Assembly (NCBI GenBank): GCA_950097015.1
Contig: CATNEN010000025.1
Span: forward strand, 2,480,001 to 2,544,000
DNA from: Macrostomum hystrix
Taxonomy: Eukaryota; Animalia; Platyhelminthes
Length of the DNA stretch: 64,000 nt
Reading direction: 5' to 3'
Made by a program: the position numbers and the translations under genes. Shown here in pieces: positions 1 to 43,599 of the stretch (positions are counted from its first letter, which is position 1; the number at the start of each line of letters is the position of its first letter). The notes under the pieces are model-generated. The model searched no databases. It was not told the origin of the DNA and was given only the letters and a program-made list of their open reading frames with translations.

Positions 1-482
1 TATAGTTGGAAGCCATGGGAGCTAATAAGACCTACAATAAAAGCGTAAAAGCGTAGGATTAAAATATATAAATATTTCTGAACGCTTCAGCTGCTGTTTT
101 TGATTCTGAGCTGTCGATAAGAAACTTCAAAAAAGTAAAAAATGTTCTTCTAAGAGAATTAAAAAATATACAATGTCAAACGGTAAAATACGTAAATATA
201 TCAAAATAGGAAGACACAATGTCTTAATTTTATTGAGATTCGGATGCATAATATAAAACAATAAAAGCAGAAAAAAACTTTGAATTTATTAACGATTGTT
301 TAACTTCCTCGAAAAAATGGTGTACGCACATAATGAAACGTAAATTCAATCACTATTTTTATAATCTACGCACTTTCGACCCAAATGCTTGTTGCTGATT
401 GTTTTTTTTGAAAATTTTCTTTCATGATCCTTAGTATTCACAATTTAGATATAAATTATACCTAAGCCCAGTTAACCCAGAT

Positions 483-23390: not shown

Positions 23391-24112
23391 GCTTTTTCTT
23401 TACCGCCTCAGTGCCCGGGATTGGAGGTTCTCACCTCATAATTGAAACTTCATTTAAATTTTCAGCCAAATAAACGTACATACGCTCGCATGTTCTATGA
23501 TACACGATTTATATTTATCTAATTGTTGTTAACTTGTCAGTTCTGGCATTTGAGATTATAAGAATCGGGCAAAATAACAAGCAGACACTCGTTGCTGTAA
23601 AACAGTTGCTGTAAAACACTAAAGGCATATAATATTAACACAGTGAATAGAACGAATTAGAAAACAGCTTGTAGGACGATTTCATTTTTAACTGAGATCG
23701 TAGAGAGAGAGAAAATGAAAGGATCTACAGTCTTTGTGTGACACAAAAGACCTGCCTATACATAGTAGAGAGAACTAAAGTTAAAAAATGATTCAATTGA
23801 AGCTTCTATCTTTGCATTGGTTAGTTTTGCATGAAATTTGTAGAGAGGAAACAAGCTGACAGCAGAAGTGGTGTGAAAGATAGGGACAGATATAAATTGA
23901 TTACCTCTAACATTTATAGCAAGCTTTTAGCAAATTCGCGGCAGATTAATGACTGATCTCTCTGGTGTGTGAGTACGCTGCTTTCGCGAGAACAATCTGT
24001 CCAACGCAGACGTGGTGAAAGAGACACAAATGGAAAAAAAACTGGGTACAGGCATTGAAGGATTAAAGCAGCAGTTGAGTTTGCTGGGCCAGTGCACTTA
24101 GAATTCTGTCCA

Positions 24113-39700: not shown

Positions 39701-40282
39701 TCCGACTCTCGTGAGGTTTGTCATTTTAGAAAGCTTTGCAATTAACTCGTTAACCATTCGAGTCAGCCGACATGTCTTACAATGAGACGCCTCAGAAGTC
39801 AAGATCTATGCCGGCACGAACAAACGACTCGAACCTGTCAGTCCATCGGCCATTGATTAATCACTTCACCTACGTGCCTCAACTGTGTGTCGTATTTTAT
39901 GAAGTCGCTGTGAGGTTTTTCAGCCTTTGCGATCCCAAACAAAATGCCTTTGAATAGACTTGCACAGACATAGACTCGGCCCCGGCTGGAGGAAAATCGA
40001 TTTAATTACTTCCTTGGTTGCTCCAAGCCGGGAGAACTTTAAGGCGAGGGAAGAAATGAGAAATGGATAGGAGAAAGATCCAGAGAAAAAGTTCTATATA
40101 TGTTGGCAGAAAACTCCCATGCCGCTCCGCACAATAATCCATTCACTACTGGAACAAATTTTCCATTTCACATCAGCTTTTTAAAACATCTATTCGGATT
40201 GTAATATATGAGATCATGAGAGTAAACTGAGAGAATGAGAGAGTTGGGTGAGAGAGAGGACACTGCCCATTGAATTTCAAAA

Positions 40283-41380
40283 GGAGAGAGAAGGAGAGAG
40301 TAGGTGAGAGAAGGAGAGAGTAGGGTGAGAGAAGGAGAGAGTAGTTGAGAGAAGGAGAGAGTAGGTGAGAGAAGGAGAGAGTAGGTTAGAGAAGGAGAGA
40401 GTAGGTGAGAGAAGGAGAGAGTAGGTTAGAGAAGGAGAGAAAAGGTGAGAGAAGGAGAGAGTAGGTGAGAGAAGGAGAGAGTAGGTGAGAGAAGGAGAGA
40501 GTAGGTGAGAGAAGGAGAGAGTAGGTTAGAGAAGGAGAGAAAAGGTGAGAGAAGGAGAGAGTAGGTGAGAGAAGGAGAGAGTAGGTGAGAGAAGGAGAGA
40601 GTAGGTGAGAGAAGGAGAGAGTAGGTTAGAGAAGGAGAGAAAAGGTGAGAGAAGGAGAGAGTAGGTGAGAGAAGGAGAGAGTAGGTTAGAGAAGGAGAGA
40701 GTAGGTGAGAGAGGGAGAGAGTAGGTGAGAGAAGGAGAGAGTAGATGAGAGAAGGAGAGAGTAGGGTGAGAGAAGGAGAGAGTAGGGTGAGAGAAGGAGA
40801 GAGTAGGTGAGAGAAGGAGAGAGTAGGTGAGAGAAGGAGAGAGTAGGTGAGAGAAGGAGAGAGTAGGGTGAGAGAAGGAGAGAGTAGTTGAGAGAAGGAG
40901 AGAGTAGGTGAGAGAAGGAGAGAGTAGGTTAGAGAAGGAGAGAGTAGGTGAGAGAAGGAGAGAGTAGGTTAGAGAAGGAGAGAAAAGGTGAGAGAAGGAG
41001 AGAGTAGGTGAGAGAAGGAGAGAGTAGGTGAGAGAAGGAGAGAGTAGGTGAGAGAAGGAGAGAGTAGGTTAGAGAAGGAGAGAAAAGGTGAGAGAAGGAG
41101 AGAGTAGGTGAGAGAAGGAGAGAGTAGGTGAGAGAAGGAGAGAGTAGGTGAGAGAAGGAGAGAGTAGGTTAGAGAAGGAGAGAAAAGGTGAGAGAAGGAG
41201 AGAGTAGGTGAGAGAAGGAGAGAGTAGGTTAGAGAAGGAGAGAGTAGGTGAGAGAGGGAGAGAGTAGGTGAGAGAAGGAGAGAGTAGATGAGAGAAGGAG
41301 AGAGTAGGGTGAGAGAAGGAGAGAGTAGGGTGAGAGAAGGAGAGAGTAGGGTGAGAGAAGGAGAGAGTAGGGTGAGAGAA
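40283..41380. repeat. 20-bp purine-rich minisatellite (GAGAGAAGGAGAGAGTAGGT)
   Basis: About 55 units; same family as the repeats around the hammerheads. Confidence 0.96.
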
Positions 41381-42442
41381 TTAGGAGGAGTGTAAGCGCA
41401 TCTCCCACAGCCAACGCCATGTCAAACGAAGGCTAATTGGAAGGCCCTATCATCTCTCATCATAGGCACCAAAAGCTGAGCATACATTTTAAATGTTGGC
41501 AGAGCAGGCATATTTTTGTCCTGTCCTAATCAGAATTTTGTTTGTCCAGCACTAATATTTGAATGAATGCATGAATTCAAAAGTACAATTGATTTGAAAA
41601 CAGGAAAAAACTGATTAAAGGCACTAGCCAATCGACGGTGCACTCAGTTCTGATTGGATGAGAGAAGGGAGTGGCTAGAAGATAGAACAGGTTTTTGTAT
41701 GCTAGCAATTAACACAGCTCTGAGGACAGGCAGAGAGGTTCGAATGGATATTGTCTGCATGACTACCAACTCAGAACTTCAAATCTCCAATATTAAACTA
41801 CCTCATAGTTTAAACAATGACTTCTCCAGCTAGGGCTACTAGAAGCAGCAGCAATTTCGGGTGAGAAAGCTTTCACTGTTCAACAGGAGCTGACTGACAC
41901 ATATCACGTGCATTTCGAAAGTGAGGATGTGAATAAAAGAGGAGACGAAATGGAAGACAGTTGACCGATTGGCAGCAAGAAAATGCACAGCTGTGACGAT
42001 TGTCAGATTGGAGAGAAAATAGAAAGAGAGTAGGGTGAGAGAAGGAGACAGTAGGTGGGAGAGAGAGAGTAGAGTAAGCGAAGGAGAGAGTAGATGAGAG
42101 AAGGAGACAGTAGGTGGGAGAGAGAGAGTAGAGTAAGCGAAGGAGAGAGTAGATGAGAGAAGGAGAGAGTAGGTAAGAGAAGGAGAGAGTAGGGTGAGAG
42201 AAGGAGAGAGTAGAGTGAGCGAAGGAGAGAGTAGGTGGAGGAGGAGAGAGTAGGTGAGAGAAGGAGAGAGTAGTGTGAGAGAAGGAGAGAGTAGGTATGA
42301 GAAGAAGAGAGTAAGGGAGAGAGGGAGAGAGAGAGAGTGGGAGAGAGGAGAGAGGACACTGCCCATTGAATTTCAAAAATCTAATGTTGGAATCGATTCC
42401 GATATGTATCGAAAAAATTGAAATCAGGATTCGAACCAAGGC

Positions 42443-42487
42443 AACTCTAGACGCGTTTCGCTCTTATTGGAGCTCATCAGTAGAGTC
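42443..42487 (-). ncRNA. Minimal type I hammerhead ribozyme, copy 1
   Basis: Minus strand GACUCUA-CUGAUGA-GCUC(CAAUAA)GAGC-GAAAC-GC-GUC^UAGAGUU: complete core, 7-bp stem I, 4-bp stem II, palindromic ACGCGU stem III. Predicted cut between 42450 and 42449. Confidence 0.9.
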
Positions 42488-42742
42488 TAGCCTACACCTA
42501 CTCTAGAGAGAGTAGGTGAGAGAAGGAGAGAGTAGGTGAGAGAGGGAGAGAGTAGGTGAGAGAAGGAGAGAGTAGGGTGAGAGAAGGAGAGAGTAGGTAT
42601 GAGAAGAAGAGAGTAAGGGAGAGAGGGAGAGAGAGAATGGGAGAGAGGAGAGAGGACACTGCCCATTGAATTTCAAAAATCTAATGTTGGAATCGATTCC
42701 GATATGTATCGAAAAAATTGAAACCAGGATTCGAACCAAGGC

Positions 42743-42787
42743 AACTCTAGACGCGTTTCGCTCTTATTGGAGCTCATCAGTAGAGTC
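42743..42787 (-). ncRNA. Minimal type I hammerhead ribozyme, copy 2
   Basis: Identical to copy 1, offset by exactly 300 bp. Predicted cut between 42750 and 42749. Confidence 0.9.
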
Positions 42788-43599
42788 TAGCCTACACCTA
42801 CTCTAGAGAGAGTAGGTGAGAGAAGGAGAGAGTAGGTGAGAGAGGGAGAGAGTAGGTGAGAGAAGGAGAGAGTAGGTGACAGAAGGAGAGAGTAGGTGAG
42901 AGAAGGAGAGAGTAGGGAGAGAGGGTGTGAGAAGTAGTAGGGTGAGAGAAGGAGAGGTGAAGTTTCTTGAATGTGTTAATTTCAGGAAAATATATTTTGA
43001 AGATAAGGGAATTTCCGTAAAATTGAAAAACTTCTAGTTTTTTTGCTACCTTTTCGGGAAAATAGTTTCTTTGAGGAGTCAAACGAAATACGAGTATTTT
43101 CGGAATTTCTTTCCCGAATTATCAATTCGGAATTGGCTCAAGCGAAGAGTGCATATTCTAACATTTCTACCCCCCTAAGCTTTAGGTCTCATCTTGAAGA
43201 GCACTCTAAATAGCGGAAATCGTTAATCCTTATCCAACGTCTCTCGTTATTCGATCGGTGCGTTCTGATTGGGTAACGGAAAAAGGCCCAGAAGAAACTA
43301 GAAAACTGTGAAGCAGCTCCACAGAGATAAGCGGTCACGCTTTGCTGATTCTGAAGTTCCCATCCCAGTGAAGCCTCTGGATCAATCAATAAGATACCAA
43401 AGCAAGCTGAGAGATGGAGGGCATTGCGGCTCGGGCCACATACCAATGAGAACTGGTATGGAAATGCTATAACTGCTTCGAATATAATATATTTTTATTC
43501 GAACATATTTACTAACAGCTGGAACATAACATCTATACTAGCAGCTGGAACATAACATCTTTGCTAACAGCTGGAACATAACATCTTTACTAACATCTA

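Follow-up and report, generated by a model that had tools for sequence, protein, structure and literature searches.

A tandem hammerhead ribozyme pair in a polypyrimidine minisatellite of Macrostomum hystrix, probably a DNA-level duplication of one truncated mobile repeat

The DNA analyzed here is a stretch of 64,000 nucleotides from the flatworm Macrostomum hystrix (assembly GCA_950097015.1, contig CATNEN010000025.1, positions 2,480,001 to 2,544,000 of the forward strand), referred to below as the window. Its minus strand carries two identical type I hammerhead ribozymes (Rfam clan CL00010), A and B, each within a truncated copy of a dispersed repeat that is flanked by a 20-bp polypyrimidine minisatellite (Table 1). 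Read from 5' to 3', each hammerhead consists of a helix I strand, CUGAUGA, helix II, GAAAC, GCGUC and the 3' strand of helix I. Helix I is made up of GACUCUA/UAGAGUU (7 bp) and a distal AGGC/GCCU (4 bp), and helix II of GCUC/GAGC (4 bp) with the loop CAAUAA. The conserved core CUGANGA...GAAA and an NUH triplet are present in both copies as CUGAUGA, GAAA and GUC, and the open pairing of helices I and II was obtained in the cmscan alignment and reproduced by the minimum free energy fold. The predicted cleavage sites are 42750|42749 and 42450|42449, with C42750 of hammerhead A and C42450 of hammerhead B as the cleavage C on the minus strand, and are spaced by exactly 300 nt. A previous interpretation made from the letters alone (the sequence-only reading) had described two intact minus-strand type I hammerheads 300 nt apart, and both the cut sites and the spacing proved exact. 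Helix III of both hammerheads is the palindrome ACGCGU alone, which can form a 6-bp helix between two copies and is unstable within one.

In the strict sense, HH9 denotes an intronic ribozyme conserved among amniotes. A hammerhead search of the window with the Rfam model of this class (Hammerhead_HH9, RF02275) aligned the model end to end with both window hammerheads at 36.9 bits (E 1e-7), which is below its curated gathering cut-off of 52, and at Rfam gathering thresholds no match was reported in the 64-kb window. The core, helix II and loop II are near the HH9 consensus (GCUCCAAAAAGAGC) and the two-part helix I is shared, whereas the helix III hairpin is missing (five consensus positions deleted; 36.9-38.1 bits against the cut-off of 52), and this absence is the main cause of the low score. 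The missing hairpin also bears out the earlier statement that stem III is a bare palindrome of the dimer-dependent type. A 31-nt stretch of the ribozyme, the same in both window copies, is the commonest form genome-wide; it has 48 exact genomic copies, while the reversed-pattern control returned 0. These counts, together with the complete core and the exact spacing, indicate that the motif is genuine rather than a chance match. In canonical animal hammerheads of type I, helix I measures ∼6 bp and helix II 4 bp, helix III has 1-2 bp below a small palindromic loop, and two copies are active when paired (PMC4209133). Judged by its architecture, the window pair would be of this ordinary, dimer-dependent animal type. 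In a read-through minus-strand transcript the two ribozymes could pair with each other through ACGCGU and, as the sequence-only reading had proposed, such a transcript could release a predicted RNA of 300 nt.

Table 1. Features of the locus (window positions) and of the canonical repeat unit (unit positions, taken from the copy at locus L028).
Feature	Position	Strand	Basis or remark
Hammerhead A, HH9-like type I	window 42730-42796	-	Rfam RF02275, 36.9 bits, E 1e-7, model positions 1-77
Hammerhead B, identical to A	window 42430-42496	-	sequence reading and Rfam RF02275
5'-truncated family copy A	window 42609-42794	-	BLAST against canonical unit, 95.7%; unit 151-334
5'-truncated family copy B, truncation point and junction as in copy A	window 42307-42494	-	BLAST, lag-300 identity
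B-box-like motif of copy A, GGTTCGAATCC	window 42737-42727	-	
T6 tract of copy A	window 42717-42712	-	
Two tandem 300/302-bp blocks	window 42275-42876	-	lag-300 plot, global alignment; Tandem Repeats Finder (TRF) period 300, 2.5 copies, 94%
5' junction, 10-nt inverted satellite copy (CACCTACTCT-CT-AGAGTAGGTG) directly before the element	window 42795-42816	-	sequence
Host 20-bp polypyrimidine minisatellite, unit CTCACCTACTCTCTCCTTCT	window 42025-42957	-	TRF; interrupted by the two element copies
Main array of the 20-bp minisatellite, 54.5 units	window 40282-41380	-	TRF
Third family copy, no ribozyme, unit 267-322	window 40229-40282	-	pattern match, sequence, BLAST
Structured, purine-rich 5' part	unit 1-124		
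A-box-like motif TAG(C/T)CTAATGG	unit 131-141		matches TRGCNNAGTGG at 10/11
Hammerhead	unit ∼151-206		cut after 195
B-box motif GGTTCGAATCC	unit 208-218		perfect
T6 tract	unit 228-233		
3' region, then CT-rich tail	tail from about unit 290		

Each window core corresponds to the 3' 186-188 nt of a dispersed ∼336-nt repeat. Copies A and B keep the whole hammerhead, the B-box motif, the T6 tract, the 3' region and the CT-rich tail, and lack the first 150 nt of the unit, among them the A-box-like motif. They lie in two tandem blocks, each of which is made up of ∼75 nt of satellite, the junction, the truncated element and more satellite; the junction recurs at 42495-42516. Self-comparison of the minus strand at a lag of 300 was perfect over ∼250 nt apart from one core substitution, and the identical stretch comprised the ∼75 nt of upstream satellite, the junction and the core, continuing past a 2-nt indel. 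Overall the blocks are ∼99% identical and differ by 1-3 substitutions and the 2-nt indel (one mismatch and two gap columns in their global alignment). A G-to-A change in helix I is common to both cores and absent from the rest of the family. The shared junction, this private change and the identity at lag 300 together point to a duplication of DNA that already held the insertion, and thus neither to two insertions nor to reverse transcription of a dimeric RNA. The sequence-only reading had named a recent local duplication as its alternative, and the identity through core, junction and flanking satellite now favors that alternative.

The array has been a repeated target. The third family copy, 2 kb away, is differently and far more strongly truncated at its 5' side, to about its last 55 nt, and lies in the same orientation as A and B at the downstream edge of the main array, so that the satellite must have been hit at least twice; moreover, at two other loci (L039 and L065) a single array holds two family copies with different truncations. 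Independent insertion of the two window cores into the same array is nonetheless very improbable, as they share the truncation point, the 10-nt inverted junction and the private helix I G-to-A change, and the adjoining satellite units show an identical variant pattern.

The explanation we favor, with a probability of roughly 0.78, is that one truncated insertion in a locus-specific satellite, followed by a 300-bp duplication at the DNA level, gave the ribozyme pair. A single 5'-truncated complementary DNA copy (∼186 nt) of the 336-nt element would have entered the 20-bp polypyrimidine minisatellite, and a 300-bp block comprising the element and ∼114 nt of satellite would then have been duplicated as DNA, with unequal exchange or slippage between flanking satellite units as the likely cause. 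The data do not support a reading of the 300-nt unit as a retrozyme-like element built on a minisatellite: the canonical family unit measures 336 nt and has a different, structured 5' half, and the rod fold of the canonical unit is missing from the 300-nt monomer. The suggestion that the element could be spreading the minisatellite was not supported either. In the 220-Mb genome a junction 24-mer was found only at the two window sites, and a two-unit satellite query (≤2 mismatches) matched only within 40330-42900 of the window. On this evidence the satellite appears to be the landing site and not cargo, which settles the direction of the link between satellite and ribozyme: the satellite is the target.

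When the core was searched in the 220-Mb assembly, 132 candidates were obtained, of which 40 were scored, at 97-100% identity and over many contigs. Pattern counts gave 92 genomic copies of the ribozyme 31-mer with ≤3 mismatches and 132 copies of the 3'-end motif of the family. The 92 hammerhead-bearing copies and 132 3' ends agree with the earlier claim that the cores belong to a retroposed repeat of the retrozyme or Penelope-associated kind. As a cleaved monomer or circle, the canonical 336-nt unit folds as a long rod with 67-69% of its bases paired and ∼-125 kcal/mol (z ∼-5.5 relative to shuffles), in which the 5' part pairs with the 3' region and the CU tail. The GC fraction is 0.49 in the canonical unit and 0.46 in the 300-nt window monomer. 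As in non-long terminal repeat (non-LTR) retrozymes, GC is low, there is no LTR, primer-binding site (PBS) or polypurine tract (PPT), and the only open reading frames (ORFs) are of low complexity. A tRNA identity of the family was considered and rejected: ARAGORN called no tRNA in the window or in four canonical loci, and Rfam gave no tRNA match at E up to 1, so that the tRNA likeness of the canonical unit consists of the two box motifs. By these features the family would be a non-autonomous element of the Sm-alpha-like or non-LTR-retrozyme-like kind.

Whether the duplicated pair could act as a unit of its own was assessed against this canonical form. As a working retrozyme variant, the 300-nt repeat would be cleaved as a dimer, yield a 300-nt RNA that is half satellite, form a circle and perhaps be retroposed. 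Both ribozymes are intact with a full helix I including its distal part, both match the commonest family form, and a palindromic helix III needs a nearby second copy, which the duplication supplies (PMC4209133, PMC7229834). On the other hand, the 300-nt monomer, half of which is unstructured CU-rich satellite, is only 31-34% paired at -47.5 kcal/mol, compared with 67-69% and -125 kcal/mol for the canonical unit, and the rod is absent. The A-box-like motif is lost, and the T6 tract between the two ribozymes would stop RNA polymerase III (Pol III). The segment between the ribozymes is host DNA duplicated along with the junction, and no sign of mobility is seen, junction and satellite being unique to the locus. 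No gene-like ORF or other sign of transcription was seen near the pair in the window. The poor fold, the lost A-box-like motif, the intervening T6 tract and the absence of a gene-like ORF nearby would all count against a working unit, and we regard this possibility as improbable.

The anatomy of the family was examined at 80 loci, selected by the presence of the ribozyme, which hold 82 independent copies. Most of the 82 copies end, on the 3' side, at unit positions 332-336 or 1, and thus within the CT-rich tail. The 5' ends are scattered: 32 copies are 5'-truncated and ∼30 begin at or near unit position 1 after CT-rich DNA, while ∼18 of the 82 extend into a partial upstream unit, up to a maximum of 1.64 units. 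Two ribozymes within one continuous element were found at five loci, and there at the canonical spacing of 316-336 nt and not at 300 nt. At least one 100-bp flank with ≥80% C+T on the sense strand of the element was present in 76 of the 82 copies and a purine-rich sense-strand flank in 0 of 82, and none of the 80 loci contained a family fragment in the opposite orientation. At the same threshold, 5.7% of the 100-bp windows of the 64-kb stretch are CT-rich and 2.6% GA-rich; relative to this background, taken from one 64-kb window, both the CT-rich excess and the one-way orientation far exceed chance expectation. The CT-rich flanking tracts differ from locus to locus. Upstream and downstream flanks share ≥20% of their 12-mers at 20 of the 80 loci, compared with 0.2% of pairs from different loci, and this sharing within loci indicates that the family inserted into pre-existing, locus-specific arrays.

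One copy lies outside any array (L011:1125-1790, sense orientation). It measures 1.41 units and has an 85-bp target duplication (3 mismatches), the start of which is next to a CT tract; its 5' end is at the ribozyme cut site, after 4-5 extra bases. An enrichment of 5' ends at the cut site was considered and found unconvincing, with two candidates (L011 and, as a putative case, C2:7353327) against ∼0.4 expected (Poisson p ∼0.06); a third match was a point mutation. An apparent cluster of 5' ends at unit 155-168 was rejected as a sampling artefact of selecting loci by ribozyme presence.

Truncated copies that recur with their surroundings were also found elsewhere. At L064 two truncated family copies lie 222 bp apart with an identical junction. 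Five identical, truncated copies of 222 nt occur at L049 (G000:C38:21522500-21529700) at spacings of 680-690 and 1589 bp, and these build a higher-order tandem repeat of ∼2.27 kb around the ribozyme insertion. At both loci truncated copy and satellite appear to have been duplicated together, as in the window.

Penelope-like elements were considered as the putative source of the integration machinery. They are known to form partial tandems and to show an insertion bias toward microsatellites (PMC8557442), and animal retrozymes have been proposed to be their non-autonomous derivatives (PMC7229834; bioRxiv 10.64898/2026.07.22.740005). Such elements co-exist with the family in this genome: at least 134 genomic matches to a GIY-YIG-bearing ORF were found, with open frames of up to 750 aa. 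This ORF is read as a Penelope-like C-terminus, of which Pfam confirmed only the GIY-YIG domain. Three 5'-truncated Penelope-like copies with such an ORF (L103:979-2086, L104 and L105) have, ∼200 nt downstream of the stop codon, a hammerhead of the minimal type, CTGAAGATGGCTAGTTTTAGCCGAAACGCGTC, whose helix III, GAAACGCGUC, and cut site are those of the hammerhead family. L103 is inserted inside a 20-bp AATCC-type minisatellite, and at L104 a partial copy lies inverted, in head-to-head arrangement. These three were rejected as the family's partner, their 3' end being different, and two short repeats 5.8 kb apart (L084/L085) were rejected as a segmental duplication without ORFs. Two further Penelope-like copies, C8:2492698-2493528 (-) and C8:2496088-2496918 (+) of G000, lie in opposite orientation and are separated by ∼2.6 kb; their frames stay open for 666 and 750 aa, the matched part contains no stop codon, and both may be intact autonomous elements.

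The fixed 3' end internal to the cut, the variable 5' ends, the partial tandems, the long target duplication and the bias toward simple repeats would fit target-primed reverse transcription, which is probably supplied to the family by Penelope-like elements. The purine-rich strand of a nicked CT/GA-rich target would anneal to the CU-rich tail of the RNA, and this annealing would fix both 3' end and orientation. Synthesis would then stop at variable points, sometimes after entering a second unit. As copies run from tail to tail and beyond, we infer that the template is multimeric or circular. A more far-reaching proposal can be built on this, namely that the family homes one way into polypyrimidine/polypurine minisatellites by purine-strand priming on circular or multimeric ribozyme RNA, and that host arrays amplify truncated copies by unequal exchange into new dimer-cutting pairs that release circles with host satellite. 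Taken as a whole this chain is speculative and rather unlikely to hold in full. What is modestly new stands at the level of the family, i.e., the one-way polypyrimidine integration, the fixed tail end and the amplification of truncated ribozyme copies by arrays, and the data suggest a testable rule of target choice based on complementarity between tail and target.

Several observations weigh against the interpretation given here. The background of CT-rich DNA was estimated from the one 64-kb window only. Among the Penelope-like copies examined, no lineage with a 3' tail matching that of the family was found, and the A- and B-box-like motifs and the T6 tract of the canonical unit would also fit a Pol III short interspersed element (SINE) moved by another reverse transcriptase. 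Further points come from the Logan contigs of four small public runs (one study, kind unrecorded). These were the only public runs found to contain the family core, and no run recorded as RNA had the sequence. Mapped on 42300-42860, the contigs cover the core and then continue into the canonical 5' part, with the canonical bases at 42748 and 42724. They show the canonical family form and neither the window junction nor molecule ends or joints, and no read among them spans the pair.

The last of these points also bears on whether the second block could be an assembly artefact, either a false repeat expansion or two alleles placed in tandem. The ∼99% identity of the blocks and the very repeat-dense surroundings, with at least 42% of the window in tandem arrays, would be compatible with such an error. 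Yet the blocks differ by a core substitution and a 2-nt indel, a 300-bp unit is far shorter than a long read, and comparable duplicated truncated copies exist at L064 and L049. An artefact is accordingly quite improbable, and a genuine duplication of the truncated insertion together with its satellite is preferred.

The closest known counterparts of the family are metazoan non-LTR retrozymes and the schistosome SINE-like elements Sm-alpha and Sj-alpha, whose ∼335-bp units also include a type I hammerhead (Ferbeyre et al. 1998, described in PMC2770079 and PMC8490949). Compared by description only, the schistosome elements share with it the unit length, the canonical type I hammerhead and the short helix III, and they are likewise dispersed, locally tandem and read as tRNA-related SINE-like retroposons. 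In contrast to them, the tRNA likeness of the family is limited to A- and B-box-like motifs flanking the ribozyme, the copy number is low (∼100-130) and the association with polypyrimidine tracts is strict; the window copies, in addition, start at unit 151, truncated and without the A-box-like motif. With metazoan non-LTR retrozymes (Cervera and de la Pena 2020, PMC7229834) the family has in common a canonical type I hammerhead, a unit of ∼300 bp, a GC content of <50%, the absence of LTR, PBS and PPT, the rod fold of the canonical unit, the presence of Penelope-like elements in the same genome and, where a target duplication can be seen, its large size. It differs in that insertions are ≤1.64 units and not long multimers, and in that only ∼5 loci have two ribozymes at 316-336 nt. 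The window pair differs further, as it appears to stem from a DNA duplication that included host satellite; since host satellite and a locus-specific junction are part of its repeat, the 300-nt unit would not count as a repeat derived from the element.

Likeness to Penelope-like elements (PMC4209133, PMC8557442) is seen in the partial tandems with a variably truncated upstream unit, the bias toward simple repeats and the variable-length target duplications, and one lineage in this genome shares the GAAACGCGUC helix III and the cut site. Unlike these elements the family has no ORF, and its ribozyme is canonical, with a 4-bp helix II and a 6-7-bp helix I, rather than of the minimal Penelope type. 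The target biases reported for Penelope-like elements are (TA)n, (CA)n and (C)n, whereas the family prefers CT-rich minisatellites. Its features are in line with a mobilisation of animal retrozymes by Penelope-like elements, from multimeric or circular RNA, as has been proposed. The window locus is best read as a truncated and then duplicated member of a mobile repeat family of known type and is, taken by itself, of little significance.

The wider window is rich in repeats, with at least 42% of positions 1-64000 (∼27 kb) occupied by some 30 different minisatellite arrays (periods 7-70 bp), the majority of which are not rich in CT. No convincing ORF was found at 30-56 kb, where all ORFs lie in tandem repeats. 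Among the other family loci, a tRNA-like sequence was observed on the opposite strand directly upstream of a truncated family copy (L019:1395-1490, sense). It recurs in both orientations in the flanks of L025, L072, L065, L013 and L005, and probably represents a SINE of its own, derived from a tRNA.

A second short dispersed repeat of ∼113 nt with ∼34 genomic matches was found at L014:815-935 (-), and a fragment of it lies in the window at 23397-23437 (+). Its hammerhead-like motif, CTGATGAAGAATTTTTAATTCGAAATATC, is minimal, and a palindromic AUAU stands where helix III would be. The 3' end of this repeat, GGAGGTGCTCTCCTCTCTCTCCC, resembles the tail of the first family, and it adjoins CT-rich arrays too. 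The two repeats together suggest that several ribozyme repeats share one integration machinery.

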